Below the pieces are notes generated by a model, which had not been told where the DNA came from, ran no database searches, and saw only the letters and a list, made by a program, of their open reading frames with translations. 64,000 nucleotides of DNA, from the NCBI GenBank assembly GCA_019828565.1, contig JAHDYR010000062.1:607666-671665 (forward strand), given 5' to 3'. Below, one piece after another: positions 25,018-55,619 of the stretch. The translations under genes were made by a program, and so were the position numbers. The stretch comes from Carpediemonas membranifera BICM. Lineage: Eukaryota > Protista > Fornicata. Each line of letters starts with the position of its first letter. Within the stretch, counting starts at the first letter, position 1.

Positions 25018-25165
25018 GCTGTGGCACTTGAATTCATCAAATGTTCCGCAGGACAAGGCTGGTCTCTGGTAAGCTCTGCGCGTTATCAGGCGTATGTTGT
25101 CGCCCCGTCTTACTCGACATAAATCATGTACCACCGTAAATGTGAAGGGCAGAATTTCGATTACG

Positions 25166-26111: not shown

Positions 26112-26995
26112 TTGGTATAAATACTTCCATAAGCGGTGGGGTGGGGTCACTGGGCTGTCGGGTGTGCACGCACTTTTTTGCCGTGACTACCACCGATGTC
26201 ACAGTATTGATTTTCCAGAAGCCCCGTGATGGGCAGTGTGACGATACCAGGACCAGGAACAATCGAATACGAGCTCAGCTGTGGAAAGAACAACGTGCAG
26301 GGGCTGCCGTGATTTTCCCACGTCTGCAAAAACCAACCGTTCGCGTTGTGCCGTGTAAGGGCCCAAAAGGATATAAAGACTGTTTACAACTTTCGCAGGA
26401 TAAGGGCACAGCGCTGCCTGGGTTGTTGTCCGCCGGGCGTGGTAGACCCGCGAAGTCACGGCTTCGCTCATGAGCACTGAGGCGAGGGTTCGACACCAAT
26501 GTGCCGAATTTGGGTCGATACATAGTCTAGAGAAATAATGGTCGATTCTTACCCAGTCGGAATCTGCGCACCCTTGCGGCACCTAGCATGGCATGAAGCG
26601 GACAATGGTAAAAGAGTTGTCGCTGGAGGCTTGCCAGCTTCTACGCTTGTTAAGGTAAGTGTACCTGCTCGTCAGGTTAGGCGAGCCAGACTTCGACTTG
26701 TTCAGAGCGTGCCAGGTGTATGGCATAAGGCTGGCGCTACATCGTCAGTAAGGTTACCTCGGGTAACGGGCCCGGAGCGGAGGGCGATGTGATAGCCTCA
26801 CTCCGGGCAAAAGGTGTTTCGCCGGTCAGGCGAGTCACGCAGTTTATGCGGACAGAATGGCGCAAAGTTCGGATCCGCCGGATCCGACGGCACGGTACCA
26901 GTTACGACTGGTATACTCCTTCTCCCTCGGTAAGCGGAGAGGACTTCACGTTTAACTTACACTAGCTTCCTCGTTAACATTGTGTAAATTAAGCG

Positions 26996-29900
26996 AAAGA
27001 AAGAAAGAAAGAAATTTATGGTGCTTGGATTCTGACCCCGGACTGAGCTTGTTTCCCGTTGTCTTGGAGCTGAGTGCCCCGGGGTACTGCCTATTTCCCG
27101 TGGCAAACTGGTCAGCAGCGTTTGCCTTGGGCTTTCGGTGCTACTGTCTTCGCGGAAAGCCGATTCCAATCGCCCCAGAGGCCCTGCGGCCATCTCCGTG
27201 CAAATATGCTTTCCTGTCTCCCTGAAAGTCCGGCAACTATCCGGGGAGCCTGGGGGTCTGTCCTCGGGGCATTGACAGGCAGGATCGTCCTGCAGAACCT
27301 TGACTATGACACTCCTTGCTTCCCTGCAGTCCTTGTAGAGCCGTTCAGCCACGGCACCCTCTCGTCTGTCCGGTTCCCCAATTCCATGCCCCCTCGACTC
27401 TGTTAAGAAGCCTACCCGAAGGCGGGGAAAGTGACTAAGTCCATGCTGTCTACCCCGGTTAGGTGGCGTGGGTCAGGGCATGGGTGGTGTACCCCCAGGC
27501 ACTAGGCCTGGTTGTCCTGTTACCCCTTACAACATTTCGCTTGCACTACATGTCCTTGGTTTCCCATGTCGTTAACAAGGGCGGCAGGGGCACCTGTGCC
27601 CCTCCGACCCCCGTGGCCAGTCCCTGCAGTTTCCTTGGGGTCCCAACGAGTGGTGCAACCATATGAATATGGATTTCCTTGACCTTATCCTTGCTCTGTC
27701 CTTGTTGCATGTCCTTTCTTTCTTATTTCTGGTCTGTCCTTCCTGTTATTTCCTTGCAGTCGTTCCTTCCCTTGCTTTGGTTCCTGGCTACCGGGATACG
27801 TGGGGCCTTTCCTCACTGATCCCAGGAGCTTAGCACCAGCGAGGGTGGTCCATGGCTGATTCCTTGTCCATCCCTTCCCGGTCCTGGAGTCAGGGGTTCA
27901 TGACATGCTTCTATTCCACCTTGAAGCTGTTGTAAACCTTTGCCAGCTCCCGTAGTCCTGCCGTGAGGCCTTCCCAAATGTCCTCCGAGCCCCATATTAT
28001 TAGTTGCTGTAATTCTAGGATGGGTCTTTCCTGGTACCATTCGCCCTGGGGGCCCTGCCTTACTTCCAAGTCCTTAGTTTTGTGCTTCGCTGCTGTCCAC
28101 AGCTTTGTCCAAGCTTCTCCCCTGTCTACTGCCGGGCATTCACAGATTATGTGCGCTGCCGATCCTAGCCTCTGGCCCTCTGCCCACTCCCTGATCATTT
28201 CCTGCTTCCTTGCTGGTCCTGGCTTTTCCCTAATGATCCTGTAGAACAGGCTCACCTCCGACTCCTCCGAGCATAGGGGGCATAGTCTGCTAATTTCTCT
28301 CTTCAGGTCAGCGCCTTGGGCCAGCTCTGTGATGGCTCTCATAGGGCCCTCCCCTCTCTCTGCCGACGATGGGGATGGGCTGACATTGGCTGCAATGGAT
28401 ACAATTCTCTTCCATTCCGCCCTGCTTTTGCCCCTTCCCAGCCTTTCGGTCTACCGTAGGCTTACCTTGCAGACACTTGCTTAATTTCCTTGTCCCCATG
28501 ATTTCCATTAGTCCTAGTGCCGTACGGCTTTTGCACCGCTTCATCCACCCCCTCCTGATCGTTTCCATGCCATAATCCAGTAGCGCTGGTTTAGGGGCTC
28601 CCTCTCTGGTGCCCTCCAGTAGATGCTGCACTCTCTCCCTAGCTTCCCACATAACCGTGCCCCGCCCCCATTCTCTGTTTCTGACTGGTATATCCTGGTC
28701 CCTGTAGTTGACTATCCTTTTGACTGCCAGCCATTCCATGTGTGCCTGGAGGTCCACCCATCCATTCATCAGCCTCATGGCTGCGCCCCCTCCCGGTCCT
28801 GTTCCTGCCATGATTCCCTGCCAGTCATTCCAGATCCTTCTACCTCCCGGTGCGTTCCCCCACACCTCGACTCCGAAGAGGATCCTGGGCCATATATATA
28901 TTTCCAGTAGTAGCCTGCTCGCTAGTGCTGGCATGTTTGCCCTGGTCCACCCTGCCCATCTCACCAGTCTCTTGTACCTTTCGCTCTGCTCCTGTTTCCG
29001 CCTTATGCAGGCCGACATAGGGTCCTTCCCACTTGCGATCCATAATCCCAGGTATCTCGCCTCCTTCTCTGGCAGTAGTGTTACCCCCTCGATCCTGACT
29101 AGGGCTGTTCTGTCCACGCTAATCATTACATTCTTCTGGGCGTTCACCCTCATTTCATGCTCTTTGATTATGTCTACCATTATGTTGGCGACCATCTGGC
29201 TATGCTCCGGTTTGCTCCCTGTGACCGCAGTGTCATCCACAAACATGGTAAGTGCTGCCGGTAGTCGGTCGCTGAGGTGGCTCGTGGTCCTTGGCGGTTC
29301 TCTGATGTCGTACCGTTCTCCCTTGATTTTCTTTCTGGCCAGGTGGGGCCAGTTAGCCATGAACAGCACAAACAGTGTCGGTGCCAGGACGCACCCTTGC
29401 TTAACTCCCCTGTTGGTTCTTTTCCCATGCCTTTGCCCCCTTGACTGATATCCAGGTTTCCTTTATTGTGCCTTGAATTGCCCTGATCAAGTGCTCCTCC
29501 ACCCCCATACCCTGTAGCTTATCCATGAGAATGTCCCTTGGTACCGTGTCATATGCCTTCTCGATGTCCAGAAAGATTGACGTGGTCTCACCCCCCTCCT
29601 GGTGCCGCTGCACAATGTACTGTATCTGCTGGATGACGTCCCTGTCTGACTGGAAACCAGCCTGTTCTCTTGGTATGAACCTTTTCGTTGCTGCTTCCAG
29701 ACGTATCTTGAGCAGTCTACCATAGACCCTGTACAGCAGTGGTGTCAAGGATATTGGTCTATATGATTCCGGCTTGACCCTTGGCTTCCCTGTCTTGTGT
29801 ATGGCCGACACTGTGGCATACTTCCATGCTTTGGGTACGTCGCCCTCCCTGTAGACCCTGTTGATGAGCCTCGTCACTTCCCTAAGGCCTTTCTCATCCA

Positions 29901-31106
29901 GCTCTCTCAGCATGTCTCCAGATGTGAGGTCAGGCCCTGGTGCGGTGTCCCTCCTGATCCTTTTGATTGCGGCTTTGACCTCGCTTTCCTTGAACTCATT
30001 TCCGTCCCTGCCCCTCCATGTCTTCCAGGTGGGTTCCCTGCCTCTGCTGACTCTAGCATACTGTTGCAAGAGGATCTCGCTGATGGCCGCCTTGTCCGTA
30101 GTTATCACTCCGTCCTTGAGGAGGCTCTCCGGCATTCCCTTGTATTGGTTATCACACCACCACCTTCTGATGGCAGCTTCCACTGAGGCCCTTGAGGCCC
30201 TATACCCCCCTTTTGCACTTCTGCTGAGGTCGGTCACCCATTTGGCCCTGCGCTCTCCCCAGTATTTCTCCAGCTCCTCTTTCATCCTTTCCTTCCTGGT
30301 CCTGTTGCCTATTTCTGTCCATGGGGTTCGCTGGAGTTCGCTCCACACTCCGTTCCCGAACACTTTGTCCCTTGCCTTTGCTCCCCTGTTGTTCACTGGG
30401 TCGCCCATGCATGCTCTTATAGTCTCTTCCCATTGGTCCGAGCTCTTGTTCCTGTTCAGCTTTGAGACTGTGACTGGCCCCTCCTTCTTTTTCATGGGCC
30501 AGGTGTGCACCTCGGGTATGGCCAGAGCCACGTCTCGCTCACTTCTGCCATAGTACCGTTGTTCCTTCCATGCTAGTGTGATTCCATTGTGTGCTGAGCC
30601 CCATACCCCGACCTTCTGAGACTCTACCACCTCAATCTCCGCCCCCTGGATTCCTGGTGTTGTCACTGCAAAGTCCGGGGTTGATGTTCCTGATGTGAGC
30701 GTCCCAGACTTGGGTATGATGGCTTTGAGCCTGTGCTTCTCCATCATATCCTTCCACCGGGTGGATCTTTCCATCTGGCCTGGGTCGATGTTCCAGTCTC
30801 CCATAATTATGGCCTCCATGCTCCCTTTCATGTACATGATCTTCTGTATAGTGTCCCTGAATCCATCCTTCTCCTGCTTGCTGTGGCCGGATGGAGGGCC
30901 ATACACGTTGATGACTAGTATGTCCCTGCCGGTTCTCATTATGCTGGCTTGCACTCTTCCCGATAGGCTGTCCGTTATGCCGATGTCCCACTTTGCAGTT
31001 GCGTGTGGGCTCACTATCGTGCCGATGCCTTCCCTTGTTCCCTTCCATCTTGGCGCAGGTTCGTCATTGCCTGCTATGCCTAGTTGTCGGTTGATGCGGT
31101 GCTGAC
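26996..31106 (-). mobile_element. 5'-truncated APE-type non-LTR retrotransposon (LINE)
   Basis: 15-bp TSD TGTGTAAATTAAGCG at 26981-26995 and 31107-31121; (CTTT)n 3' tail; ~0.9-kb 3' UTR; ORF2 begins within the endonuclease domain. Confidence 0.92.
27911..31105 (-). CDS. LINE ORF2: partial APE endonuclease, RT, CCHC (frameshifts near 29420 and 28340)
   Basis: INVYGP, MGDWN, SAH; YRPISLT, QAGF, DIEKAYD, GVKQG, FVDD, YLG; CPLC...HIICEC. Confidence 0.85.
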
Positions 31107-31151
31107 TGTGTAAATTAAGCGCCCCCCCCGTTGGTTAATGAAAAGAATGTC

Positions 31152-31463
31152 TGGGGCTACATCAGCTCTAATGTCACCTTGGGTGACGCCATCCGCAAGA
31201 GACGATCAATCGTTGCGCGGGTGCACTTTAAGCAGGCAGAATGGTAGAAACTTCGGCTCCGCCGACCGTCTCCCGTCTGCCCGCATCGGCCAAGGCCGAT
31301 GTACGGCTCATCCGGTAAGATGAGCACGTTCGACTTACATAGGTTGCCGGAGCGCAGGTAAGTCCCGAATATTTACTTAGGAGACCGGGGTTTCTAAAGT
31401 AAATCTTCTCCCCCCCCCGTTGGATATCAAGCGTAGTATGTGAGAAAGGCTTGCCAGTCAAGC
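31152..31463 (+). mobile_element. Solo terminal module 2 (diverged DIRS-1 relative)
   Basis: Starts TGGGGCTACATC (cf. TGGCGTTACATC); stem GTCACC-TTG-GGTGAC; GCAGAATGGTAGAAA; GGTAAG-loop hairpin; AGTAAAT..C9GTTGG; ends in hairpin GCTTG-CCAGT-CAAGC. Confidence 0.65.
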
Positions 31464-32039
31464 ATGAGGCTAGGATAGCTAGCTTGGTTATCAAGCGGTG
31501 CACTTTAGGGGAGAAGCGCACTTTAGAGTACCACTCGAGCCCATTGGCACCCGGGGTGCTGAGACGCCCGAGAGGGCGCACGGAAACGTGCAGTTTATGG
31601 CATCAGAATTTCGAATGCCCGAAGGCACATCGGGCCTAAAGGAGCCCGAGAAGAATAAATCCTTTACCCCCCTTTGGGAGTATGAGTTAGGTGGCTTCCT
31701 GTCACAGGACCATCACTGGCACCTGCGCGCGCCGATCAATGTGCACTTTAGGTCACACTTCGAAACGCATCGGCAGGTGTCGGAGCCGTTTCGGACCTGA
31801 CCGGATCGCGAGACGAGGATTTACCCGGGTCTGTCATAAGAGCTCGGGGAAGCCACCCGAAGTAAATACTCGCCCCCCCCATTTTGGTTGGATTTAAGAG
31901 GAGGGCTCTCTGTTATTGGCGTTACATCGCGCTGACAGGTTACCTCGGGTAACGGGCCGTGAGCGGAGGGCAATGAGATCGCCTCGCTCCGGCATGGTGA
32001 TGCGCCGACCAGGCGAGCCGCGCAGTTTATGCGGGCAGA

Positions 32040-32567
32040 ATGGTAGAAAATTCGGAACATCCAGATCCGACGGCAACGAGGCTCAATAACCTAGAAGCCT
32101 CAATCGCTACCATCTCGCAACAGCTTGCAAAGCTTAATCCGCCTCCTCCGCCGCCCGAGACCGAGCCGCCGAAGGAATCTCAAATTGATTTCTTCCCTGA
32201 ACAAGATGAAGCGGATATTGACCAAACACTGGCAGAGATGGATGCATACGGCGAGCTTCCGACAAAGAGACCACTTAAGGCGGAAGCAAAGTGGCTTCGC
32301 CGCGTGATGGTGATCGTCAACGCCCTCGACGACGAGCCGCTCAAAGCAAGACTCCTGGTGGAACTCCAAGCACGCCGTACCCTTCTGGACCTCAAGGACG
32401 ACAACTGGTCGGACGCAACCTGCGAACTGTTTCTCGACTTGTTCAACACGTCCCAGACCAAAACCCCCCGTGCCATCTCCTACTGCGCAGCCAAAGCCAG
32501 AGCCAAGGGTAAGAGAAAGGACCAGCCCCAGAACAAAGGGGGGTTTCACAAGAAGCACAAGAAGTAG
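32040..32567 (+). CDS. DIRS-1 ORF1 (gag-like)
   Basis: 175 aa; N-terminal coiled coil, basic C-terminus; starts inside repeat A1. Confidence 0.7.
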   Translation: MVENSEHPDPTATRLNNLEASIATISQQLAKLNPPPPPPETEPPKESQIDFFPEQDEADIDQTLAEMDAYGELPTKRPLKAEAKWLRRVMVIVNALDDEPLKARLLVELQARRTLLDLKDDNWSDATCELFLDLFNTSQTKTPRAISYCAAKARAKGKRKDQPQNKGGFHKKHKK

Positions 32568-32596
32568 CCCTTGCCACAGATGTTCAGTTCCCGTCA

Positions 32597-34616
32597 ATGA
32601 ACAAAAAGTGGCCGGTGTGGGCAAGACTCGGTGCCTCCCCCGAGGTAGTAAGCTGGCTGCGGGATGGCGTCCCTATCCACCTCACCTCTGCGCCCCCTCC
32701 ACCAGAACCGCAAAGGCGAGTGGACCCCCGCCTACTCCCGAAGATCGAAGAGCTAGTCGCCAAGGGCGTCCTCTCCCCGTGCCCGATAGACGAACTGCGT
32801 CACAGCGCACCCCTGTTCGCGGTGTCGAAGGGCAAAGACGATGTCCGCCCCGTGCACGACCTCCGAGCCCTGAACGAGTTGACAGCAGAGCTGAGGGTGT
32901 TTCGTCTGTTCGGCATCAGACGGGCGGTCCGCAATCTGCACAAGAACGACTACATGATCAAGATAGACCTAGCATCGGGATACCACCAACTTGGCGTCGC
33001 CTCGCGAGACTCCCCCCCTCCTAGGCGTGGTCCTACCGGACGGCCGCGCATTCAGGTACAACACACTCGGCTTCGCATGGACAGCGGCGCCGTACGTGTT
33101 CCAGAGCACGACCATACAGCTTGCAAAGATCATCGCACACAGGTTCGGGGTGACCATCGCGGTCTATCTCGACGACTTCTTAGTGTCCCATGCCTCCCCA
33201 TCGTACCTAGCTTCGGTCACCCCGCAGATCATCGACCTCATGCTATCGCTGGGGGCGATACCGGGCCTCAACAAGTGCGTCCTCACGCCGACCCAGCAGG
33301 TAGACTACCTAGGTGTCCACATAGACACCGCAAGCGAGTCCCTAAGAATCTCAAAAGACAAGGCCGAGACCTACACGGCCACGATCGCCAAGGCCCTCCG
33401 GGTCGGGTCCATCACAGCTTCAGACTGGCAGAAGCTCCTAGGCCGTCTGTCATTCTTCGCAGGGACCACACAGTTCGCCCGCCTCGCACTCAGACCACTG
33501 CAGGCCACCCCTACAACGGAGACCGTCCACCTCTCCAGCCAAATCCGCAGGCAGCTGGCGGCGTGGCAAGTCCTCCTCCGCGATCGCCCACCCAAGAGGT
33601 TCGCCGAAGCAAGAGCGGACTGGGAAATACGCGATACGCTCCAGATTTCTGTCACCTCAGACGCATCAACGTCCGGCTGGGGAGCATGCCTGTTCAATGG
33701 GGAGAAGGGAGCGGCATCACAGGGTGCCTTCCCCCCCTCATCTCAAGGGGGAACACATTGGCGTCAAGGAGCTCTTCGCGATCGCTCAGGCGATCAATCT
33801 CGTGCCCCAGCAGGAGTCACGCTCCTCTCTCACAGTCTTTGCCGACAACTCAGCTGCCATCAGCTGGGTAAACAGACGGGGATCGCCGAACCTCCCCCAG
33901 CCGCACACCAGATCCTACAGGACATCTACAACACGGCAGAAACCAAGCGCCTCGACGTCCACTGCTTCCATATTGCCGGACACCTGAATGTCCAGGCGGA
34001 CAGGCTCTCCAGGTTCGCCAAGCTCGACTGGTCGTCACCCCGAGAAGTCTTGGAAACCATCATGCGCAAGTGGGGGCCGGTCGAGATCGACGTCACAGCA
34101 CGCCCCGACAAGGTTCTGGCCTTACCAGGCTTTGCAGAAATAGCCTGGTCAATCCACGACAACGGCTTCCAGATGGACTGGAGGGGAGTCAGGATTTATA
34201 TAGCTCCTCCTATAGCCCTTCTTGGAGTGACGTGTCGTCGCCTCCAGACAATACGCGCCTCGACCCAGACTGGGAACCCTCGACACTGGAGATCAGCGGC
34301 GATAGTCCTGTGCCCGGACCTCAACTCGCCCGAGGTCCGAGCCATCAAACGTTTGACACCCCTCAAGTTGTACCTCAGAGTCCAGGCGAAACACCTCCTG
34401 CAGTCCGAGCTAGCCTGGACAGCGACAGACAAGGGCAAGATCCGCTTCGTGGCGCTTATCCTGAGGACCCGTTCCAAGCCCTCCTCGCTGACGACCGACT
34501 ATCACATTTCAGAAACGAATCGTCGCGCCGCACAGCAGCGGGCTGGGTCGCCAAATTCCTCCAATCCCGCAACGCGAGCCACTCACACGCGCAACAGCTC
34601 AAAGAGTTCCTTCTGA
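32597..34616 (+). CDS. DIRS-1 RT-RNase H-methyltransferase-like polyprotein (frameshifted in C runs)
   Basis: RPVHDLRALN, IDLASGYHQ, LGFAWTAAP, YLDD, YLG, SDAS, ADRLSR, then LDWSSP..WGPVEID..NGFQMDW..IAPPI. Confidence 0.88.
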
Positions 34617-35374
34617 CCGAGGGTACCACGTCGGGCCCACAGTCGATACACAGGAAAGGCTACTGGATTTGCGAGGCCGCCCCACTCGTGTCTGACTGGC
34701 GCCCCCCGATCGCTGCCAAGCAGATAATCGCCGCCGCCCGGAACGTCGCCTCTGTAGAAGGCCTGACCGGGGGTGCGAAGCCTGTCACGTCCGCGAGAGT
34801 CCGCAGGGTCATAGACAGACGTCGGAAGTCACCCCAAGCCTTCCAGGCCGCCCTCTTTTCTGCTCTCTGCTTTATCACCGTGAGTAGAGGCGCAGAGATC
34901 TTTGGGCTCAGACGAAGAGACGTCGAGTTCGACGCTGATGGCAATGCCCTCCTTCTGTTCGCGAGAACTAAGACTGCCACAGGCGTCCGCAAGCTGGTAC
35001 CAAACCAATCGTGGGCCCGCTTTAACCCAGCAAGGGCCCTGAAGGCATGGGTCCCCACGGCAACGCGCCGCGACGACGACCTCATCTGGCGGGCGATCAC
35101 CTCAACCGGTGGTATTTCACTATCGAAGCCGCTACCGGCGTCAACCCTCCGCCACTGGATCCACCAGGCGTACGGCACCGACATTTCGTGGCACTCATTC
35201 CGCAAGGGCGCCACCACGGAGTTGGCGGTAGCCCACACGAGTACCGAAGTCCTCCTGTCCATGGGGACGTGGGCCTCCACGAAAAGCATGCTGAGATATA
35301 TGGGCAACGGGGTCCGCACACACCCGGGGGTCCAGGGACACCTGGCCTCCATCCTTCTCCAACCACCACTTTAA
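34070..35374 (+). CDS. DIRS-1 tyrosine recombinase
   Basis: Catalytic set SRGAE(R), RTKT(K), HSFRKG(HxxR), GTW(W), LRY(Y). Confidence 0.92.
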   Translation: MGAGRDRRHSTPRQGSGLTRLCRNSLVNPRQRLPDGLEGSQDLYSSSYSPSWSDVSSPPDNTRLDPDWEPSTLEISGDSPVPGPQLARGPSHQTFDTPQVVPQSPGETPPAVRASLDSDRQGQDPLRGAYPEDPFQALLADDRLSHFRNESSRRTAAGWVAKFLQSRNASHSHAQQLKEFLLTEGTTSGPQSIHRKGYWICEAAPLVSDWRPPIAAKQIIAAARNVASVEGLTGGAKPVTSARVRRVIDRRRKSPQAFQAALFSALCFITVSRGAEIFGLRRRDVEFDADGNALLLFARTKTATGVRKLVPNQSWARFNPARALKAWVPTATRRDDDLIWRAITSTGGISLSKPLPASTLRHWIHQAYGTDISWHSFRKGATTELAVAHTSTEVLLSMGTWASTKSMLRYMGNGVRTHPGVQGHLASILLQPPL

Positions 35375-35948
35375 ATCTCTGACGGGAGCTAGTGGCTGGG
35401 AGAGCTAGGTAGGGTGGGGCTGACACGCGTTACAACGGCAGATGTAAGCCACAACAGACATTCTTTGACGCGGTCTCTCAAGGAGACGGTCGGTTTGGGC
35501 TCGCAAGCGTGCCTGCAAGCCATTCCACTATGCTCGTTGCCGGTGGGATATCCCCGTTGGGTAGAGCAAGTATGTCTAGAGGCTAGGACAGCTAGCTGGC
35601 GTTACATCGCGCTGACAGGTTACCTCGGGTAACGGGCCGTGAGCGGAGGGCAATGAGATCGCCTCGCTCCGGCATGGTGATGCGCCGACCAGGCGAGCCG
35701 CGCAGTTTATGCGGGCAGAATGGTAGAAAATTCGGAACATCCAGATCCGACGGCACGATACTGGTCAAGACCGGTATATCCGCCCAGTAGGTAAGCTGGC
35801 CGGAGTCCCCTGATCGTTTACACTAGCTCTCTTCTTTAATAAACGATCGCCCCCCCCGTTGGGTAGAGCAAGTATGTCTAGAGGCTAGGACAGCTAGCAG
35901 AGCCACACTTTGTGGAAGCCTAGTCTAGCAGACCATGATCCCAAAGCC

Positions 35949-35954
35949 AAAAAA
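35949..35954 (-). terminator. Pol III oligo-T terminator of tRNA-Asp
   Basis: TTTTTT 1 nt after the discriminator base on the minus strand. Confidence 0.8.
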
Positions 35955-35955
35955 G

Positions 35956-36028
35956 CTCGATCACCGGGACTTGAACCCGGGTCTCCGCGGTGACAGCGCG
36001 ATATACTAACCACCTATACTATGATCGA
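35956..36028 (-). tRNA. tRNA-Asp (GTC)
   Basis: TCGATCA/TGATCGA acceptor stem, discriminator G, D-arm TAGTATAGGTGGTTAGTAT, anticodon loop CT-GTC-AC, T-arm CCGGG-TTCAAGT-CCCGG. Confidence 0.95.
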
Positions 36029-36221
36029 ATGCATACCGTCGTAGACGCGATGCGTAAGTACGCCTCGGGGCGTGGTACAGGCCCAGATGGACTACCGGCC
36101 ATCTGGTACAAATATTCGAGAGAGATCGAATATTGACCAAATATTCGAATCAAATCTACGGTCCAGTTCAGACCAATTTTACCAAGGGGTTAAAACCCCA
36201 TTCCCCGGTAGTTCCGAGAAG

Positions 36222-36740: not shown

Positions 36741-36793
36741 TTGCCCAAGTGAGGTTATGCCATCCTCAGATATAAAAAGGCACCGTCTACGTT

Positions 36794-41419: not shown

Positions 41420-41482
41420 AGGCCAGAGAAGGGTTAAGCCTGAACCCGATGACTATAAAAGGCTCGATATACTTCGAAGAGT

Positions 41483-44285: not shown

Positions 44286-47200
44286 TGTGACGCGGTCCAC
44301 TCCCTCTTCTTCCCCGCAGTTTAAGTAAATCGTTCAACGTCCCAGCACAGTGATCACTGCTGAACTAATGTTGATCCAACCGCAACCTAGACTGAATCAG
44401 TTTACTCTCCAAGAAGCCCAAAGCTTCACCAGACAATTCAGGTTCTACAAAACCCACTACACCACGGCTCAAAACAGCCCCACAGTTCTCCAGTGCCTCA
44501 CTCTTAACCAAATCGAACACCTCCGTTTCACCTCTGGTGTAGAGAACCTGGAAACTTCATCCGACGACGAACTTTTGGACCTCATCAACCGTGTTTGTCG
44601 CCCCCGTACATTAGCCGCCACCATCCGCGCTATTGAGGCTCTTCAGCAGGATACCAAAATCTCCACCCTCGAAGGAGTCTCCAAACTCATCGCCGAGTTC
44701 CGCGAATGGCGCTCCCATGCCCAGAAGCTCCTCTCTGACACCGACGACGCTGAAGAAAGCGATTCAGAGAGTGACCCCGACATTCAGGCCCTTAATGCCA
44801 CACTGCAAGGCCAGAATGAGCGTCAGGACAACCCAGAACCCGAAAGCAAGAACCCGCCGCCCACTCAGACTCCGAGCGCCCACCGTGGTCTTGATAAGAT
44901 CATTACGAAGCTCTTCTTCAAGGCCCTTCGCCCTAGATCTCTGTCCACCGCCGTCGAACGCGACTGGCAGCTGCAAGGCCGCCGCCACGGGTTCGAGAAG
45001 CTACTCTCAACGACCCGATCCAGGCTCATCGACGCCATCGACGCAAAGGAGGAGCACGGAGACATCATCGAGAATCTCTCAACGCTCTCCGTCAGCGCCC
45101 CCGTCACCAAGACGCCCGCCACTCGCCCGCCTAGAGGCCCCCCAGGCCCATGCTCCTGCGGCAAGTGGCATTGGAAGTCGGACTGCCCCCAGCGTGCCCA
45201 CAACACCGGCAGGGCAGGCCAAAGGAACACCCAAGCCCATGCCCCCGCCAGTTCAGGCGCCCAAGCCGCTGGCGGAAACTCATCCGGCGCCTCCACGGCG
45301 CCGCCCATAAGCCGACCCCCAACAACGCCGAAAATAGACCCACGCCCCACTCAGGCACCTCAGGGGAGCGCCGCGCCGGCCACATGCACCTGCGCGATCG
45401 CTCTCAACTTCACAACTCACGCCAAGTCAACAACGTCGATTGCAACGAGGTTCAGAACGAAAGTTGCAATTACGGCGCAGCTTTCACGGTTTCGGGCTCT
45501 ATTAATGAGCAAGAGCAACAACTCACCATCGATAGCGGCTCCGCGGTCACCATTGTTTCACGTTCGATCGCAAACCGCCTGAAAATGGAAGAGCACGCCG
45601 CAGAGAAGCCATTTACCGTCCATACCGCCACACAACAAGAGGTTCTCATCACTCACTACGTCAAAGCCCGCGTAACACTCCCCAGCACATCTGGCAAGGT
45701 TATCGTCAACGACCTGGTGTTGTACCTGATGGACCGTCACACAGGTGTCCTCATCGGCTGCGACACGCTCAGGAAGCTTGGGTACCTTTCTGACCGCGGA
45801 CTCTACATTCCCCTCGTCCCGGACACACGTCCCGATGATGCGACGGACGGACTCCCCCAACACCGCTACCTCGACGCTGAGGTCAACGCCGTAACCCCTA
45901 CACCCGTCGGCGATCCTTTCAGCAGTGCATGCGAGGTCTTAGAGCTATCCACGCCAGAGCATACAGCGGAGCTCCACGCCATCCTCCGACAGTATGATCA
46001 CCTCTTTGACCCGGTCATCGCCAAGGAGCCTTGCTCATTCGCCCCTATGAGCATCAAGCTCTATGAGAACGCTCCTCCCATCCGCATGCGACCCCGGAAC
46101 ATACACCCGGACAAGCTCGAGTGGCTCCTACCCTACGTCGAGAAGCTACGCCTCGATGGCATCACTCAGCCTTCAGAAGGCCCATACGCCAGCCCAATCG
46201 TACTCGTTGCTAAGGGTGAAGCCTATCGCCTCTGCATAGACTACACCAAGCTGAACTCTTGGACGGTACCCGACCACCACCCCATCCCGAACATGCGTGA
46301 CCTACTACACCTCGCCTCCGGCTGCGGCCGCTTCGCCTGCTTAGACCTCACGTCAGGCTACTGGCAGGTCGCCATGTCACACCAAGACACACCCAAGACA
46401 GCCTTCACAGCGCCTGGCGTTTATGAAGAGTTCAAACGCATGCCCTTTGGCCTCTGCAATGCCCCAAGCCATTTCCAACGCGAGATAGAGACGCTCTTAG
46501 CACCCCACCTCTACAAGGGCATCAACCCTTACATTGACGACATCTTCCTCTACGCGAAGGACGACGATGACTTCCTCCGTCTCCTCAGGGCCCTCTTCGA
46601 GAAGGCAGACCTCGCAAACCTTCGCTTTAGCGCCCCGAAATGCGTGTTCGGGACTAAGCGAGCCGTCATGGTTGGCTTCATAGTCGACCAGGAGGGCATA
46701 CATGTGGACCCCAAGCGCACACAGGCCTTGCGAGACCTCCCCTCCCCCACCAACGTGCATGAGCTGCGAACTGTCCTGGGACAGTTTCAGTTCCTCGCCT
46801 CGTTTACAACACATCACCGTCATGAGCTTATGAAGCCTCTCACCGACCTCCTCCAGAAGGACTGTCCATGGGACTGGACGGAGGAGCGAGAGAAGGCCTT
46901 CATCGAGCTCAAGGCACTCTTCACAGACGACCTATACATCGCCCACCCAGACCCAGCCGCCGACTGGATCCTGGAGACCGACGCCTCGAACGTTGGAGCG
47001 GGCGGTGTGCTGTGGCAAGTGAAAGATGACTCAACTCAGGTCTTAGCGTACTACTCACACACCTTTAACGCAACCCAGTCACGCTGGGCGACCTGCGAAC
47101 AAGAGCTCTTCGCGATTGTGTTCTGCCTGACGCACCCCAGCTTGACCCAGCTCCTCAGACTCAAGCACTTCAAGCTCCGCACTGACCACAGCAACCTCAT

Positions 47201-48836
47201 CTATATGCTGTATAAGTCATCCATGAACGATAAGATTAATCGTTGGAGACTCACCCTAGCAGACTTCCGGTTCGACATTGAGCATGTCCCAGGCCAACAT
47301 AACACCGTTGCGGATGCCCTCAGCCGTTGTGGCCACGTCCCTGTCCCCGTTGCCGCGCTCAAAATCACAACAGACCCCGGTACACGGAACAGCTCGCCAA
47401 ACACCAGAGCACGGACCCGACAACCAGCAACATCACGCCGGACGCTGACGGCCTCCGCCGCAAGGACGGCTTAGTAGTCATACCGAAAGAGAAGTGCTTA
47501 CCACTCCGCCGGGAGCTCATGACAATCGCCCATCGCGGCCACCATGGCGTCGCTGCCACCTTGTCCCGACTCAAGCGAGAGGGATACACTTGGTCAGGCT
47601 GTGAGGCTGACATCGAAGCGTTCATAGCCGAGTGTGACGAGTGTCAGAAGGCCCGCCTACGGAACTTTGCGGAAGCGACGATGCAGACGACGGCAGTTTA
47701 CAAACCTTTCCACACTGTCGCCGTAGACACAATTGGCCCGATCCCCTCTGACGCATACGGCGCACGCTACATAACCGTCATGGTTGACATGTTCTCGCGT
47801 TACACCGAGCTCGCAGCCACTCAGGAGAACACGGCTGACGCCGCCGCCAACGCTATCTGGACCCAGGTCATCACCCGTCATGGTACCCCACTCTTCGTCA
47901 AGTCAGACAATGGCCCAGAGTACACCGGCAAGATCGTCCAGACACTCCTCGAGAACGCCGAGATTACCCAACAGTTCACACTTCCATACCATCCGCAGTC
48001 AAACGGCCTAGTAGAGCGCCGCAACGCGGAAGTGATGAAGCTGGTGCGATGCCTGGCGCTGCAGTTTGACAAGTTCGACAATTGGAGCACCCTCTTGCCT
48101 GTCGTTCAACTCCTCCTCAACACCACCATCTGCTCAGCGACCGGTATCACCCCGCACGCAATGCTGTACGGCGACCACATGGACCCAAGCGCCACCGTCG
48201 CAAAGATCATCAACGCCACAGCCTCCACACCAGACACACCTATTTCAACGGCTGCCATCTACGTCAAACAACTTCGAGGCCATCTCGATAAGCTTGCCTC
48301 TAGGGCGGCCGAGAGACAGAAGTCAACCGTCGAAAAGCGCCTGAGTAAGCGCAACGCCGACCGCGAAGACACCCCCTTCCATGCGGGTGACCTGGCCCTT
48401 CTCAACAGAACCAAGACACCTAAGCTGCACGGCTTCAAGGGCCCCTTTAAGATCCTCGCAATCCTAGACAACCACGCAGTCCGCCTCGTAGACCTGTTCG
48501 AGGGTGAGCCATTCGTGGCCCACCGGGACCAGCTCATCCGTTTCAAGACACGCAGCGGCCTTCAGCGCCTCAAGGCCCTGGCCGCCTCGGACGACCAGTC
48601 GTACGAAGTCGAAGATATCAAGAAGCACCGCCGTAAGAACGGCACGCTCGAACTACTGACCCAGTGGGTCGGGTATGACGAGCCCACGTGGGAGCCGGCC
48701 TCCAACCTGCGACACGTTGCCGTTGCCCGCGACTATCTCAAGAAGCATAAGCTCAAGCTTAGGGAGGCAGGATGTGACGCGGTCCACTCCCTCTTCTTCC
48801 CCGCAGTTTAAGTAAATCGTTCAACGTCCCAGCACA
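44286..48836 (+). mobile_element. Ty3/gypsy chromodomain LTR retrotransposon, family B copy 2
   Basis: 64-bp LTRs 44286-44349 and 48773-48836; 4-bp TSD CCCT (44282-44285, 48837-48840); PPT AGGGAGGCAGGA at 48761-48772; near-identical inverted copy of 7687-12234. Confidence 0.95.
44368..48811 (+). CDS. Family B copy 2 gag-pol (frameshifts near 45308 and 47378)
   Basis: ORFs 44350-45582, 45150-47474 and 47327-48811; same domains as copy 1. Confidence 0.85.
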
Positions 48837-49731
48837 CCCTGTGGAGATCCATACAGCACACCGAGAGCCTGCTGAGAGACAACTGCCTTCCACTGACAGC
48901 AACAAGGTGGCGCAGATGGGAGATGATCATGGACGTCAACGAGGTCTTCAAGGCAACAGGACACAGCTTCAGACGTGGAGCCGTCGTTCACATGATCGAT
49001 GAAGGGCGTTCCCCATGTGGTTCAATGGGTGTTGAACTTTTACTGAGGAGAAGACTCGACACAAGGGTGTCGAGGAGAAACTCCTTGACTATTAAATATA
49101 ACGTAAATCTGTGTAACTTTGGGTAGGACCCACAACACTGCCCCTCCATGCCTGGTATAGGCATGACAGAGAGACTTGACGTCAGCATTTCACCAAAGGC
49201 CTGGACGGTGCCACCCGACCGCCAACGGTGACTCATAGGGCTGGCAACCCCATGGCCTGAGTGCTTTCGCATCTAGCTGAACGAAATCAAAATGATGGTA
49301 TCATGATCTAACTGCGGTACCGCTATGTGAGCTCTGTTTCAAAAATGGTGAAACGTGACGGAGAGGCTTACCACTGCCCCTCCACGGCCTTCCTAGGCCG
49401 TCTTCACAAACCTTATACGTGTTATATGCCATTCCATGTAATTCGAAGGCCAAGAACGATTGCTCTAGCAAACACTGCCAATGCTGAGCCCTTATCGCTC
49501 ATAATCACACAGACGCCGAAAAACGTACTTAGAAGCTCCAATTCGGCTCCGTTGAGGAGTTCTGAGGCTTCTAATTTTCTGCGTCCAACTGTACTTGAAT
49601 AACAACATCAAACTGACCGGAAGGAGCACTAGGAAGCTCCTAATGCCTTATTACCGACAATAAATGCATGCTTGAAGACTAAGATGACCTTGTTAGTTGT
49701 TCCTTCGACCGTTTCCGAGAAATGTGCAGGA

Positions 49732-50838
49732 TATGTCGCCGTCAACTCATTTGATGTCGGACAACACAGCCGTAGAGGCCGTTCTGAAGGAAATTCGTGC
49801 CAAAATCACCGAACTTGGTGATGACGATCTGGCTAGGCCACTTATTGTTGCCCATACGTCCGTTTGTCGTTCCCTTCGCGCTCAGAAGTATCGTGGACGC
49901 AAGCGCATGGTCACCGACAATCTGTAAGTAACAAACATCAACCGTGAGGTTATATAGTCACCGCGTGCAAGCCTCAGAACGCATCACTCGCACCCTGACG
50001 ATGACGACTCTGATGCCCCACGACATCAAGGCCGAGGTTGCCCGACGCCTGGAAGGTTACACCAACTCCATCGAGCTGCCGCTCCAGCGAATCTTTGACG
50101 CTATTGAGCAAGGTCGTCTGAACGACGCAGCCGTAGTGCAGGACGTGAAGCTGACCCAGCAGGTCTTGGCTCTCGTGGCTCACTGCCAGGTCGCGCTTGC
50201 CGGTGTGAGGGCCCACCTCAAGCTCGGCAAGAAGCGCTTGACCGATGGCGACATCGTGTCGGCCGCGATCCGGGGCCGCGACATCACGCTGGGTGGGTCT
50301 TCACCCGGTAATGGTCACTACTCTGCAGCTCTCGTGGCGGCTGTGCGGACTGCCGGCGGGGTCAAGTCGGACACTACAGCGCGCGGATATCTTAACCGCC
50401 TGTTGGTCCTCGTCCTCGCACCGGACTACTTCCGTGTCGCTGTCTACGGCATCAGCCGGCGCATCCCGGCTCCCAACGACTTCTGGGCAACCCTGGTCAG
50501 CCGCTTGTGCCACGACGGCTACCTGCCCGCCATTGGCGATGAGGCTCACTGGGGAGCCGCTTCAGGTCTCTGATCCGGACCGCTACTACACTGTCACGTG
50601 CGTAGTCCGTCACGAGTATCTGAAGACGACTTGTGGTCCCGGGTCTTTTGTGTTGATCCTGCAGTATGACGGATACTCGGGACTCAGCATCGTGTCCCTC
50701 AACGCTGATCTCTGCCTTGTCCGGTGTGTGCGAGAGTACTTGGCTGAGAACGCCCTTGAGCGCCACGCTGACCCGACTTGGTTGGTCGAGCTGACGGACA
50801 CGGAGGAGACGGAAGACGAGGAATCTAGCTCTGAATAA
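49732..50838 (+). CDS. Antisense accessory gene of family C: probable 34-nt intron and C-terminal chromodomain-like segment
   Basis: GTAAGT..TATAG intron 49924-49957 joins ORF 49697-49927 in frame to ORF 49944-50573. A 1-nt shift in GGGG (~50551) would join to YYTVTCVVRH..LILQYDGY..VREYL. Confidence 0.5.
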
Positions 50839-50880
50839 ATCGTTTGTTCCTCGAGGATACAGCTTCGATGTTGAGAAGTT

Positions 50881-53800
50881 TTACAGACCGTCACGCTTGG
50901 CTTGGTCAGACTTCAAATATGTATCGAGGGCTTCCAAATCTTTGACGTGCGAATAAGGTTCGAATGAAGCCTCTGAATCCTCGAATCCGACCCAGTGTAC
51001 GAGGTACTCGCGCCTTGACTTGGGGCCCGAGCCTCTAGAGCGTGAGATGCGCTCGACATGCCACTCATCGACGGAAGCGGCTGCGAGGTCATAGATCTGT
51101 TGCTCCGAGAGCTTGCCTGGGTCAAATCTTCGCACACGTGCCGCGTCTACCTTGATAGTTGGACCGTCCGCTGACTGACTGAGGTCTTGGACCTCATATG
51201 CGACGACAACACCATCACGTTTGACGGCTGCGACACGCCTCATGGGGCCGCGCCAGCCCGGGGCTAGCTTGCTCGGTGGTCTTGGGTAGTATTTGACCAG
51301 CACGAAACGGCTCAATATCTCGCTTCTCGATGAGGTTGCCTTTGCGAGAGCGTCTTCGCGCATGGCTCTAATCCTTGCTTTGGCGAGTTGGATGGCGGCA
51401 TCGGCTGCGGCTAGCTTCGACTGTGGCGGACCAGCCGAGGCGGCATCCGTGATATAGATCGATGACGGTATTGATAAATTGGCGCCAAACATGATCTCGG
51501 CCGGAGTCAACCGGGTCGGGATCCTGGGCATTGAGTTGACCAAGAATTGGGCGACTGGTAGGTGTGCTACCCAATCGTTATTCCTTAACTCCAGCTTCCT
51601 GGCTCTGAGGATGCGTTCGACCTCCTTGTTCGCGCGTTCGACGACACCGTTGCTCTGGGGATGGTATGCTGTCGTTATGTGGACGTCGAACCCCATCTCT
51701 TCGGAGAGGCGTTTGAACAGAGCGTTTTTGAACTCTGAGCCCCCATCCGATTGGACGACTTCGGGGCATCCGTATCGTAGAATCCAGGTGTTGACCAATG
51801 CGTTGGCTGCGTCTTTGGCTGAGGTGCTGTTGACCGGGACTAGCTCTGTCCAGCGGGAGCACATGTCGATCATTACTGTCACGTAGGACAGGCCGTTGAC
51901 CGTCGGTAGCGGACCCATGGTGTCAATGGCCACACGCCGGAACGGGAGGTCTACAGCTGTATGCAGGCCGTCGGGCGTATCAACAGGAGGGCGGGCCAAG
52001 ACTTGGCACTCTGGACACGCGGTAATCACGTCGTCTACGACTTGACGGGAGACAGACAAACCGTCGGCCCTAAGTTGCTCGGTTGTCATCCGGCGAGACA
52101 GATGAGCTCCTGCTGTGAGATGAGCGCGGGATACCTGATCCCTCGACGCCTGTTGCATGGAGAATACTCTCGAGAGACCGTCGGCTCCACCGTTGTCCAG
52201 ACCGGCGATGTGCTGTAGGGTGAAATCTAAATCGGCGATCGAATCAGCCCACCGGCGGACCTTGGCGTTGGTGGACCGGTACATATAGAGTAGGTTCCGG
52301 TGATCCGTGAGAATAGTAAAGCTCTCCCAGCACAGGAACTTGCGCCATCGTTGTAACGCTGCGACGATAGCGTAGGCTTCTTTCTCACCGGTACACCAGC
52401 GTGACTGGACGTCGTTGAACGCACGCGACATATAGCAAACTGGTCGGCCCTCTTGGAGTAAGACTGCTCCGTACCCGACATCGGATGCGTCAGTCATGAC
52501 AGTGTGAGGCTTAGTCGCGTCGAACATGGCTAGAGCGTCGGCCGAACATAAAGCTTGTTTCAGATCGTCCAGCGACTTCTGAAGAACGTCTCGAGGGGGT
52601 CTGCCGACCGGACATGGCGTCTAGCAGAGGCTTAGCTCGGACCGCGAAGTTGGGTATGTAATCGCGGAAATAGTTGAGGAATCCGTTGAGACCCTGCATG
52701 CCCTTCGTGGATGAAGACAGCTTGAGGTTCGCGATATCTTCGGTCCGCTGGGGTGAGATCTTCACGCTGCCTTGGGATATGATCCACCCGAGGAACTCGA
52801 CCTCTTGCCGACCGAACTGGCACTTATCTCGGCCGAGCTGAAGGTTAAGCTTGTCAACGCGTTGCATGACTTTTTCGAGGTTTCCCAGGTACTCGTCCTC
52901 ATCCGCACCCATGACGATGATGTCATCAATGTATATGACACAGGCGGAGCCCACCAGACCCTTGAACCCGTCTTCCATCGCCCTCTGGAAGTACGCTCCG
53001 GCGTTACGTAAGCCGAAGGGCATCCGTGTATATTGGTATTGACCAAAAACAGTACGGAAGGCGGTTAGGTGACGGCACCGTTCAGAAAGAGGGATCTGAT
53101 GGTATCCTGCTGACAAGTCTAGGGTAGCGAACACAGACTTTCCGGACAGTTGAGTGAGAACTTCGTCTATGCGAGGGATGGGGTAGTCGAATGGTTCCGT
53201 TAGTTGATTGATCTCGCGGAAGTCGACGACAAAACGCGTCTTTCCCCCCTTCTTTGGAACTATGATGGTAGGGCTCGCGTATTGAGACTGGCATGCCTCG
53301 ATGTAGCGCTTTGCCAGGAGCGTATTAATGTGCTCTTGAATGATCGGGACTTTCGGCGGGGGAACATAGTACGGCCGAATGTGTACGACTCTGTCGCCCT
53401 TGAGGACCAAATCATACGGTTCGAGCCGGCTTGGCTCGGTACGGTCCACGAATGTCCGGGCGTAACGCTTGAGGATGTCGGCCTGCCTCTGAGAAAAGGA
53501 AGAGGACATGGCTCTGGCTTGCGCGACGTACTTCTCGAATGTAGGTGGTTCGTCGCTGGCTGCGAGCTCGCTGGTAGGCTCAGACAACGAAGGGAGAAGG
53601 CCGATCTCCACCATCTGAGGGTAACCCAGGCATACATCGAAAGCGGTCGACAGGACGTAGGCCTTAATAGTGATAGAGCATCCGCGCGGAGTGAATGGCG
53701 AGGGCGCTAAGACGAGGCGGAAGGATACCTGACCATCGGCCTCTCTGACGCCGCCCACTGTCTCGATAAGTGTCTTCTCGTGTGAGATCCACTTCACTGC

Positions 53801-54817
53801 CTTGCCGTGGCAGAGCTTGGGGTCAATGGTTGCGCAGTCAGCGCCCGAGTCGAACAGGACGGACACGACTTGCTTAAGAATGCTAGCCTTGACGGAGGGG
53901 AGGACACTCTGACGGGAACCGAGAGAAAACACACAACGAGCTGAATTTACCTCAGAACGGCAGAATTCAGCTCGGTGGCCCGGCTTCTGGCACTTGGAAC
54001 AGGTTGTCTTCGGAGCAGGGCATCGGCGAGCGGAGTGACCGACCTTACCGCAGTTGAAGCACACGAATGGCTTCTTCTCGTGCTTGGGCTTGTCGATCGG
54101 CTTGCCTTTTGAGGGGGCTACGTTCGTGCGGTCAGGCTCGCGTCGATGAGGGTTCTTCGGACCGCTCCCCGTGTGCCGTGTATGGGAGGGCGTGGTGTTG
54201 GTACGCTGTGAGTCGGAGACCCCCGCAGCGCCGAAGGAAGCGATCATCTCCTTGGACTCCTTGAGGTCGCGTGACATGACGAGGACATCAGCCATTGCGT
54301 CCTTGAGATCCTTGCGCTCCGTTGATTCTCTGACTCGATACATGATGCGACTGTTGTTGGGGAACTTGAAGCAGCGGCTGTACGTCTCCTTCAAGACGTC
54401 CTCGGGATCTTCGGGTTGAACGAGCTTCAAGAGCAGATTGAATCGGCGGTTCACTCGAGCAACCTCATCAGGCTCGAAGGACTTGGCGGGGACTCGGAAG
54501 AGCTGTAGACGCATGCTCGGGCGAGAAGGTCGAAGGGCAGCACCGAGGCGCTTGAGGACTCGTTCATCTTGGGCTGCGACACGACGTTTCTTACGGAGCT
54601 TCGCGGAGAGCAGGAGAGGAGTGTCTTCAACCTCTTCGTCGTCGTTAAGGCCTGCTAGCTCTGCTATGCTAGGCTCGATGAGGTCAATAACATCATCGCG
54701 GCCGCCTAAGGCGCGATGATCGTGGAGGTTATCCGCAAAGTCCAAAAGAGCGTCCATGGAGGACTTCTTCAGGAGAGGCGGATTCTTCTTCAGGCTTCTG
54801 TAAGTTTCCGTACCCAT
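50881..54817 (-). CDS. Family C gag-pol (one frameshift near 52590)
   Basis: Two CCHC knuckles (CFNCGKVGHSARRC, CSKCQKPGHRAEFC), FDSGA, YIDD, TDAS, ADGLSR, integrase, chromodomain WHVERI..YLVHWVGF. Confidence 0.92.
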
Positions 54818-55619
54818 ATGTTTTGGTAGTACTAGTACTGTGGTTCAATGGGTGTTGAACTTTTACTGAGGAGAAGACTCGACACAAGGGTGTCGAGGAG
54901 AAACTCCTTGACTATTAAATATAACGTAAATCTGTGTAACTTTGGGTAGGACCCACAACACCCATTGATTATTCAGGCACTAGGAGGCTGGAAGTCGATC
55001 GATTCGGTGAATAGATACTGTGAAGAGGCCATTCGAATCTCACAGCATGCTCTGCAGAGAAGAACATAGAATATAGGACATAAGAGAGCATTGTAGCGAT
55101 AAAGGGAGATGAAACGGAACGAGGGGAGAAGAAACAGGCAAGAGTTAGAGAAATGGATGTTTCTCGGATTCGGAACAGGAATTACATATGCCACGTATAA
55201 CCGGCACAGAAGGTCATAAGTGCAGTAGAGGAAGGCTCAGGGGTACCATCGCAAGGTTAGATGGCGGGATGCATCAATTTGGAATAGTCGATTATCGTCG
55301 ACCAAATGGTCGGCATATCATCGATATGTAAGCTATCACGCCTCGGGCGTGGCTCACGCCCTGACACTGCTGGGTCAGGGTGTGTCAGAACAGGATTCCG
55401 GGGACACGAGAAAGATGGCCAAAATATTTAGAAAATCTCGAAAGATATGATTGTGGATACGGTCTTGATCCGTCCCGATCGCGAGCAGATCGTATCCCTC
55501 CAGCAGAAACCGTGAGGATGGCCGAAGGCGACACGGATGACGGGCCAAGGCCGCCAAACGGAATATAAATTTGATCTAATCAATTTGGAATAGTCGATTA
55601 TCGTCGACCAAATGGTCGT

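Follow-up and report, generated by a model that had tools for sequence, protein, structure and literature searches.

Co-oriented tyrosine-recombinase retrotransposons on both sides of a tRNA-Asp gene in Carpediemonas membranifera

A 64,000-nucleotide stretch of Carpediemonas membranifera DNA (the window, C54:607666-671665 of a 24.2-Mb, 69-contig assembly; contigs are designated C and loci L) contains a 28.9-kb island in which retrotransposons with tyrosine recombinase (YR) genes load both sides of one tRNA-Asp gene. The question raised by this locus is what piled the elements up in a single orientation. The original prediction, made from the letters of the window, held that each new circular copy attaches to the terminus of a relative, so that an integron-like array grows from the tRNA anchor. 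From the flanks of related copies elsewhere in the genome, a different answer was reached: the tRNA-Asp gene was very probably loaded on both sides by tRNA-homing retrotransposons of the DIRS order, similar to the PAT group, and the stack arose by repeated insertion at positions defined by the tRNA gene. Attraction between the elements need not be the main cause of the pile.

Island boundaries and repeats were determined by repeat finding, self-BLAST and direct reading of the letters. Seven recombinase-element units were distinguished (solo1 to solo4, DIRS-1, DIRS-2 and DIRS-3) instead of the six proposed earlier, since the unit first called solo3 consists of solo3 and of solo4 nested in the solo3 B repeat. 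The co-orientation of all units on the plus strand and the anchoring tRNA-Asp gene (35955-36028, minus strand) were confirmed; this tRNA gene, identified by ARAGORN and Rfam, is the only host gene in the island. Searches of the same genome with each element returned dozens of copies with 98-100% identity, and flanks were read at 50 loci (L001-L050). All junctions were read from one assembly of one strain.

Insertion sites beside tRNA genes

The related families DIRS-2, DIRS-3 and DIRS-4 were found to start 1-3 nt 5' of the mature tRNA end at about 30 sites, always pointing away from the tRNA gene with the 5' end of the element against it, the spacer being 1, 2 or 3 nt. Among the first 20 loci, ARAGORN placed a tRNA gene 1-3 nt from the start of DIRS-2 (its A1 repeat) at eight loci besides the window, always on the opposite strand (Tyr twice, Met, Thr, Ser, Lys, Cys, and Asp behind a micro-remnant of DIRS-2), and a ninth (Gly) was readable in L018. 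Rfam tRNA coordinates added sites for all three families. This partial tRNA list was supplemented by a genome-wide search with a junction pattern composed of the shared A start, 8-10 free bases and the start of the tRNA A box, which gave 47 matches versus 0 for the reversed control. The matches comprised 30 tRNA 5' ends, 11 junctions between B and A within the elements themselves, and 6 B ends of relatives after which the next element began following 0-1 nt. The identity of the tRNA was confirmed by ARAGORN or Rfam at 20 upstream sites, and the isoacceptors include Asp, Tyr, Met, Thr, Ser, Lys, Cys, Gly and Pro. With about 45 independent left ends and up to 500 tRNA genes, approximately 0.001 such sites would be expected by chance. 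Left ends outside the classified set include C63:637043, C47:7356, C6:1424108, C30:33079, C1:689688 and C63:708105.

On the other side of tRNA genes, 19 DIRS-1 right ends were read with their flanks, and 15 of them were located 20-68 nt from a tRNA 3' end on its downstream side, each convergent with the gene and at a total of 15 different genes (three Arg, three Ala, Asp, Thr, Ile, Leu, Gly, Met, Val and Pro among them); two more cases were found in L037 (Glu, 50 nt) and L048 (Asp, 41 nt). At 10 of the 15 tRNA-adjacent right ends no relative is present at the junction. Where older solo families are the first occupant, they lie 20-25 nt from the tRNA 3' end (L009, L014, L016, L033 and the window). 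Taken together, DIRS-1 and the solo families occupy a zone roughly 16-70 nt downstream of the tRNA 3' end, with the element 3' end facing the tRNA gene. Among sampled tRNA genes that had been selected because one side carried an insertion, 7 of 9 and 5 of 15 had the opposite side occupied as well.

An empty counterpart of the upstream site was available in L048, where a tRNA-Asp gene identical to that of the window (as is the copy in L008) is followed by AT and then by TTAC. DIRS-2 and DIRS-3 lie exactly between AT and TTAC in the window, and DIRS-2 lies there in C56; comparison of the empty and filled sites shows nothing duplicated and nothing lost. No core is shared at the tRNA-Asp site between the target and the GTCG/GCATA junction of the elements, and no common core or trinucleotide was found at the sampled junctions. 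At two tRNA-Tyr paralogues the DIRS-2 cuts are 1 nt apart, again without duplication. Downstream, the host B repeat is continuous across DIRS-1, and its uninterrupted version is present in L014 and L016. A crossover of the phage type, inside the tRNA gene at a core common to gene and element, was not seen: the elements are inserted outside the gene, either 1-3 nt upstream of it or at a distance of 16-70 nt on the downstream side, and have no such core.

The position and orientation of the elements are fixed by the tRNA gene. Integration is a precise, clean joining of the junction between the B end and the A start to the target, with neither a duplication nor a shared core. Of the two associations that had been proposed for testing in the flanks of genomic copies, that with tRNA genes was borne out, and relatives' termini did not prove to be the main site.

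Three further observations were made beside tRNA genes. Micro-remnants of DIRS-2, in which 12-16 nt from the start of A are fused to the terminal 30-56 nt of the element, occur at L006:6164-6232, in L008 (between tRNA-Asp and DIRS-2) and at C8:27797-27824, and may be footprints of excision or deletion. A tandem array of a deleted DIRS-2 derivative (position 4598 joined to 1198) is anchored at a tRNA-Tyr gene (L016:2422-9548, C35:137421-144547). Another family, designated E (start TGGCAAGGCCAGCGG; a gag-like open reading frame (ORF), RVT_1 and a weak RNase H match), has its 5' end 1-3 nt upstream of tRNA genes for Tyr, Thr, Cys and Leu (L017:1550-4501, L001, L004, L015 and L026), and DIRS-2 was later inserted between family E and the tRNA gene at four loci.

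Structure of the elements and of the island

DIRS-1, DIRS-2 and DIRS-3 have split direct repeats of the form A1..B1A2-X-B2. In DIRS-1 the repeats are A1 31917-32075, B1 35552-35596, A2 35597-35755, X 35756-35853 and B2 35854-35898 (A 159 nt, B 45 nt, X 98 nt), and in DIRS-2 they are A1 36031-36264, B1 40319-40359, A2 40360-40593, X 40594-40633 and B2 40634-40674 (A 234 nt, B 41 nt, X 40 nt). Within each full-length element the internal B1/A2 boundary equals B2 joined to A1 and is a copy of the circle junction, as had been proposed for DIRS-2 and DIRS-3. Every family has a 5-bp stem with a 4-5-nt loop flush with its 3' terminus (40645-40674, 55589-55618, 35869-35898 and 31434-31463); these hairpins are individually weak (z -1.2 to -2.5), and their stem sequences differ between families, which amounts to covariation. 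No inverted repeat pair was found in 24000-58000, and the termini are direct repeats, so that the elements do not have the DIRS1-like arrangement.

Reverse transcriptase (RT) and RNase H-type domains (Pfam RVT_1, RT_RNaseH) and a Phage_integrase domain were detected by Pfam in all three DIRS elements, inside which no rve domain, the mark of a DDE integrase, was found. DIRS-1 carries ORF1, RT, a weak Dam-like stretch and the YR ORF (34070-35374), which on alignment to Cre keeps the residues at R173, K201, H289, R292, W315 and Y324; homologues of this ORF are found among the annotated proteins of Carpediemonas membranifera. The Dam match in DIRS-1 (E = 0.016) is weak and below the Pfam cut-off, and DIRS-2 and DIRS-3 yielded none; P0002, a relative with 59% identity, has a precomputed PF05869 assignment. 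Protein identity is about 50% between DIRS-2 and DIRS-3 and about 28% between DIRS-1 and either of them. A 959-aa ORF of DIRS-3 (41449-44328) was rejected as the coding frame, being mostly an alternative frame with no Pfam match; the RT frame is 41483-43582.

Judged by structure and domains, the elements belong to the DIRS order, probably with the PAT-like group as the nearest. The PAT-like or DIRS-order elements treated by Poulter and Goodwin in 2005 (cited in PMC7192593), which reportedly include PAT, Kangaroo and Prt1, resemble those of Carpediemonas in having ORF1, RT, RNase H and a Cre-like YR with no DDE integrase. Both sets also have A1..B1A2..B2 split direct repeats with internally joined termini, and neither makes a target duplication; the probable Dam-like methyltransferase stretch may be a further likeness. 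The elements of Carpediemonas differ in a unique X of 40-98 nt between A2 and B2 and in their strict association with tRNA genes, for which no report on a PAT-like element was found.

The layout of the island is given in Table 1. The anatomy of solo1 stood as first described, except that it starts one base later, at 26732. The placement of solo2 inside the solo1 B repeat was also upheld (split at 31151/31152 and 31463/31464), as was the start of solo3 directly after solo1 (31483, followed by 31484). DIRS-1 does split a B repeat at CTGTTAT/AGAGCC, but the host is the B repeat of solo4 and not of solo3; the solo4 start TCCTGTCACAGGACC.. and end ..CACTTTGTGGA recur in L014, L016 and L024. DIRS-2 and DIRS-3 were correctly read as fused head-to-tail at GTCG/GCATA (40674/40675), and an identical junction is present at C11:353703/4 (L013).

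Table 1. Features of the island, in window coordinates
Feature	Position	Strand	Basis or remark
solo1 left part (A repeat and X region), DIRS-1-related A-X-B unit	26732..26995	+	A 80% identical to DIRS-1 A
LINE (long interspersed element; APE endonuclease and RT), in solo1, outside the recombinase-element system	26996..31106	-	Pfam Exo_endo_phos_2, RVT_1
solo1 B repeat, left 30 nt	31122..31151	+	intact B of solo1 family in L033
solo2, complete A-X-B, nested in solo1 B 20 nt from its end	31152..31463	+	
solo1 B repeat, right 20 nt	31464..31483	+	intact family B in L033
solo3 left part, begins one base past solo1 end	31484..31696	+	intact B end of solo3 family in L038, L009
solo4 left part, nested in solo3 B 13 nt from its end	31697..31916	+	
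DIRS-1, full length, 18 nt inside solo4 B	31917..35898	+	Pfam RVT_1, Phage_integrase; repeats 100% identical
solo4 B remnant, 18 nt	35899..35916	+	
solo3 B remnant, 13 nt	35917..35929	+	
Native 25-nt 3' flank of tRNA-Asp, including T run	35930..35954	.	
tRNA-Asp(GTC), intact, anchor of both stacks	35955..36028	-	ARAGORN; Rfam RF00005, 59 bits
Native dinucleotide AT, tRNA 5' end to DIRS-2	36029..36030	.	empty paralogous site in L048
DIRS-2, full length	36031..40674	+	ORF1, RT, RNase H, YR
DIRS-3 left part (A1, ORF1, RT/RNase H, YR start)	40675..44285	+	
Ty3/gypsy chromovirus in DIRS-3 recombinase gene, outside the system	44286..48836	+	Pfam; edges against intact DIRS-3 in L010
DIRS-3 middle piece	48837..49015	+	99% identical to L010 6464-6648
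Second chromovirus in DIRS-3, 123-bp long terminal repeats (LTRs), outside the system	49016..54961	-	edges good to a few bases
DIRS-3 right part (B1 55273-55312, A2 55313-55542, X, B2 end 55618)	54962..55618	+	
Native upstream flank of tRNA-Asp (TTACGTGGGA..)	55619..55720	.	directly beside tRNA and AT in the empty paralogue

The LINE and the two chromoviruses are unrelated later insertions. The LINE has a 15-bp target duplication (26981-26995 and 31107-31121) and an (AAAG)n-type tail, and the first chromovirus has 64-bp LTRs and a 4-bp target duplication. A second, inverted copy of this chromovirus lies at 7577-12238 of the window and has a terminal 110 nt of DIRS-3 sequence in common with the first (44286-48946). 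It therefore does not represent a clean insertion of its own, but either a segmental duplication or another hit at exactly the same place in DIRS-3. The minus strand immediately to the left of the island holds an uninterrupted ORF of 1963 aa (19243-25134).

Origin of the array

Under tRNA-defined insertion, each new copy would enter at the same spot and displace older copies outwards. Upstream, two insertions at the same base would give an exact fusion of B2 to A1 that mimics a circle junction, as in the window and C11, and a one-base offset between insertions would leave a 1-nt spacer (C63:16148, C16:555866). Downstream, with a target range of about 50 nt, the next copy would tend to land in the terminal B repeat of the previous occupant. 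Insertion at one tRNA spot would thus lead to head-to-tail fusions, to insertions in the last few dozen bases of relatives and, because the tRNA gene sets the orientation, to units that all point the same way, without any self-attraction. For the window, counting from the tRNA gene across the 25 nt of native flank, solo1 would have entered at 25 nt and solo3 later at the same base, followed by solo4 at 38 nt and DIRS-1 at 56 nt, with solo2 at 45 nt if it preceded solo3. The apparent ages fit this order: the repeats of the tRNA-proximal DIRS-1 and DIRS-2 are 100% identical, a mismatch and two nested LTR elements are present in the distal DIRS-3, and the distal solos are diverged (the solo1 A repeat is 80% identical to that of DIRS-1). 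The integrating molecule would be a reverse-transcribed circle, closed at the junction of B and A and recombined by the Cre-like recombinase of the element, and the solos (A-X-B) would stem from recombination between A1 and A2.

It appears fairly probable that these elements represent a YR lineage with position-specific, sequence-independent integration at RNA polymerase III genes, in which sister families dock either at the tRNA start or past the terminator. There is a slight leaning towards a recombinase, or a partner protein, that would be positioned by the RNA polymerase III machinery at the tRNA gene rather than through DNA homology. The upstream families would be directed by TFIIIB or the start site, as Ty3 is, and the downstream families by TFIIIC or the terminating polymerase, as TRE3 is; the Cre-like enzyme would then join the circle junction to coreless DNA, presumably guided by a protein tether or by the terminal hairpin.

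Alternatively, the recombinase or another element protein may read conserved DNA of the tRNA gene itself, such as the A box or acceptor region, much as phage integrases take tRNA genes for attachment sites, with no part played by polymerase III factors. Tyrosine recombinases are readers of DNA sequence, those of prokaryotes often use tRNA genes, and a cut that stays 1-3 nt from the mature 5' end whatever the isoacceptor would suit such a reader. So would the result that no recombinase element adjoins the 5S or U6 candidates in the coordinate lists, although five 5S genes and one weak U6 candidate are too small a sample to speak for or against a general targeting of polymerase III genes. (The five 5S rRNA genes, at C23:8851-47168 with a spacing of about 9.5 kb, are probably inside rDNA units.) However, sites of the phage type are internal to the tRNA gene and have a core in common with the element, whereas the insertions described here leave the gene intact and show no such core; the downstream families, moreover, span a 50-nt range in unrelated flank, which resembles the tethering at a distance of TRE3. 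Direct reading is regarded as rather unlikely, but is the chief alternative to placement by the polymerase III machinery. Recombination of a tRNA-primed cDNA with the tRNA gene was rejected as a source of the association, given the native flank that separates element and tRNA gene and the more than 13 isoacceptors used.

That the circle junction recombines with termini or internal junctions of relatives, so that growth is cassette-like and the tRNA gene is only the first landing place, is judged distinctly improbable as an account of the array. It is true that all units of the window touch or split the end of a relative, and that head-to-tail junctions at relatives' B ends recur (the 6 pattern matches, the window and C11). 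In addition, DIRS-1 of Dictyostelium is reported to prefer its own copies as insertion sites (PMC5006619, citing Cappello 1984). Nevertheless, native tRNA flank, without any relative at the junction, received about 30 of the upstream insertions and at least 10 of the downstream ones, and the empty paralogue in L048 reveals integration into plain tRNA flank. The positions at which relatives were entered vary in their distance from the relative's end (13, 15, 16, 18, 20, 32 and about 50 nt), an argument against attachment at one fixed site there; they have no motif in common with the circle junction and are always within about 70 nt of the tRNA gene. The order of families is not fixed either, DIRS-2 being proximal in the window, C16 and C6 and DIRS-3 in C63 and C68. 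Attachment of each new circle to a relative's terminus is thus unneeded and fits poorly, since most independent copies adjoin a tRNA gene without a relative.

Several points weigh against tRNA-defined insertion as the whole account. Approximately 270 kb of the genome was read, and 63 of 497 tRNA candidates were scored in the Rfam search. For four of the 19 DIRS-1 right ends, all of them inside relatives, no tRNA gene is present within 1.5 kb, and a few DIRS-2 and DIRS-3 left ends lie inside relatives, with a tRNA gene absent within 1.5 kb or with flanks unknown. The distance from DIRS-1 to the tRNA gene is 20-43 nt in native DNA versus 41-68 nt where a relative's B end is present, which speaks for some self-directed insertion, and a pull of the relative's end on DIRS-1 may therefore exist. 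Tandem dimers with a shared A (A-int-B-A-int-B-A-X-B) occur in DIRS-1, DIRS-2 and DIRS-3 and are not predicted by simple stacking. Such dimers would be expected from insertion of an A-int-B circle into the internal B1/A2 junction, and equally from homologous recombination; tandem dimers or trimers were found at C36:210508-218163, C6:1107792-1113683, C9:358459-363095, C26:192158-201048, C6:513856-522496 and C68:674657-688467. Six DIRS-1 copies that end at B1 (A-int-B only) and the micro-remnants beside tRNA genes were likewise counted in favor of some self-directed insertion. Self-targeting is accordingly seen as a possible minor route, and not as the cause of the array.

An origin of the arrays in homologous recombination, unequal crossing-over, segmental duplication or assembly errors is highly improbable. 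Copies that are 99-100% identical could recombine or be misassembled, and the second chromovirus copy with its 110 nt of DIRS-3 indicates that segmental duplication occurs. Against such an origin, some 30 different tRNA genes are involved and each locus has flanks of its own, paralogous sites have junctions offset by 1-2 nt, and the diverged solos of the window are unique sequence that an assembler would not misjoin.

Relation to known systems

Most of the independent copies sampled have the features of tRNA-targeted elements, namely a defined distance, many kinds of tRNA gene and a fixed orientation. The upstream families resemble Ty3 of Saccharomyces cerevisiae and NLTR-A of Dictyostelium purpureum, which integrate a few bases from the tRNA start at many isoacceptors; Ty3 integrates at the polymerase III start site and NLTR-A 2-6 bp upstream of the mature coding sequence (PMC5911963, Table 1). 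The use of tRNA flanks as safe sites in a compact genome is common to all of these, but Ty3 and NLTR-A integrate through a DDE integrase or target-primed reverse transcription and make target duplications, whereas the Carpediemonas elements have a YR and a fixed orientation and duplicate nothing. DIRS-1 and the solos are comparable to TRE3 and Skipper-2 of Dictyostelium, which insert tens of bases downstream of tRNA genes (PMC5006619, PMC5911963); TRE3 (L1-type) and Skipper-2 (a chromovirus) differ from Carpediemonas DIRS-1 in element class and in enzymes.

Dictyostelium DIRS-1 is similar in being a YR retroelement that is nested and stacked with relatives and for which integration through a circle junction has been modeled (PMC5006619, PMC7192593). 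Its clusters are centromeric, whereas those of Carpediemonas are small, dispersed and tRNA-anchored, and most copies lie in native tRNA flank and not, as with self-insertion of the DIRS-1 type, mainly in their own copies. Integron arrays share a tyrosine recombinase, units that seem to enter at one end by a fixed anchor, and short hairpin-forming ends. The integron comparison of the original prediction nevertheless did not hold: integrons have a platform integrase gene and attI, neither of which is present here, and in Carpediemonas the anchor is a host tRNA gene and the units are autonomous retroelements, which carry their own recombinases, and solos.

A related element with a 45% identical recombinase fragment was seen in another assembly (L051:1-260; GCA_002919055.1, PPCM01003992.1). 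The full copy there is preceded on its left by stacked short C-run units like B ends, and the contig ends before the position of a tRNA gene.

Targeting of tRNA genes has been documented for elements with a DDE integrase (Ty1, Ty3, DGLT-A, Skipper-2) and for target-primed elements (TRE, NLTR), and reviews of tRNA-targeted retrotransposons, in which DIRS-1 appears as a self-targeting element, name no others than LTR and non-LTR elements (PMC5911963, PMC5006619). The specificity of DIRS-order recombinases is unstudied experimentally (PMC7192593), and no report of a tRNA-targeted tyrosine-recombinase retrotransposon was found in a full-text literature search. If the present reading is true, these families would be the first tRNA-targeted members of the DIRS order, and would exemplify a natural site-specific recombinase re-aimed by host transcription factors. 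Tyrosine-recombinase elements would add a third, mechanistically unrelated integration chemistry to safe-site targeting at tRNA genes. YR chemistry normally needs identity between partner sites, and here a precision of 1-3 nt is attained on unrelated flanks, which bears on recombinase engineering, where a Cre-like enzyme might be aimed by something other than DNA homology. It also bears on how DIRS-order elements integrate and on the consequences for the host of such a load on its tRNA genes.

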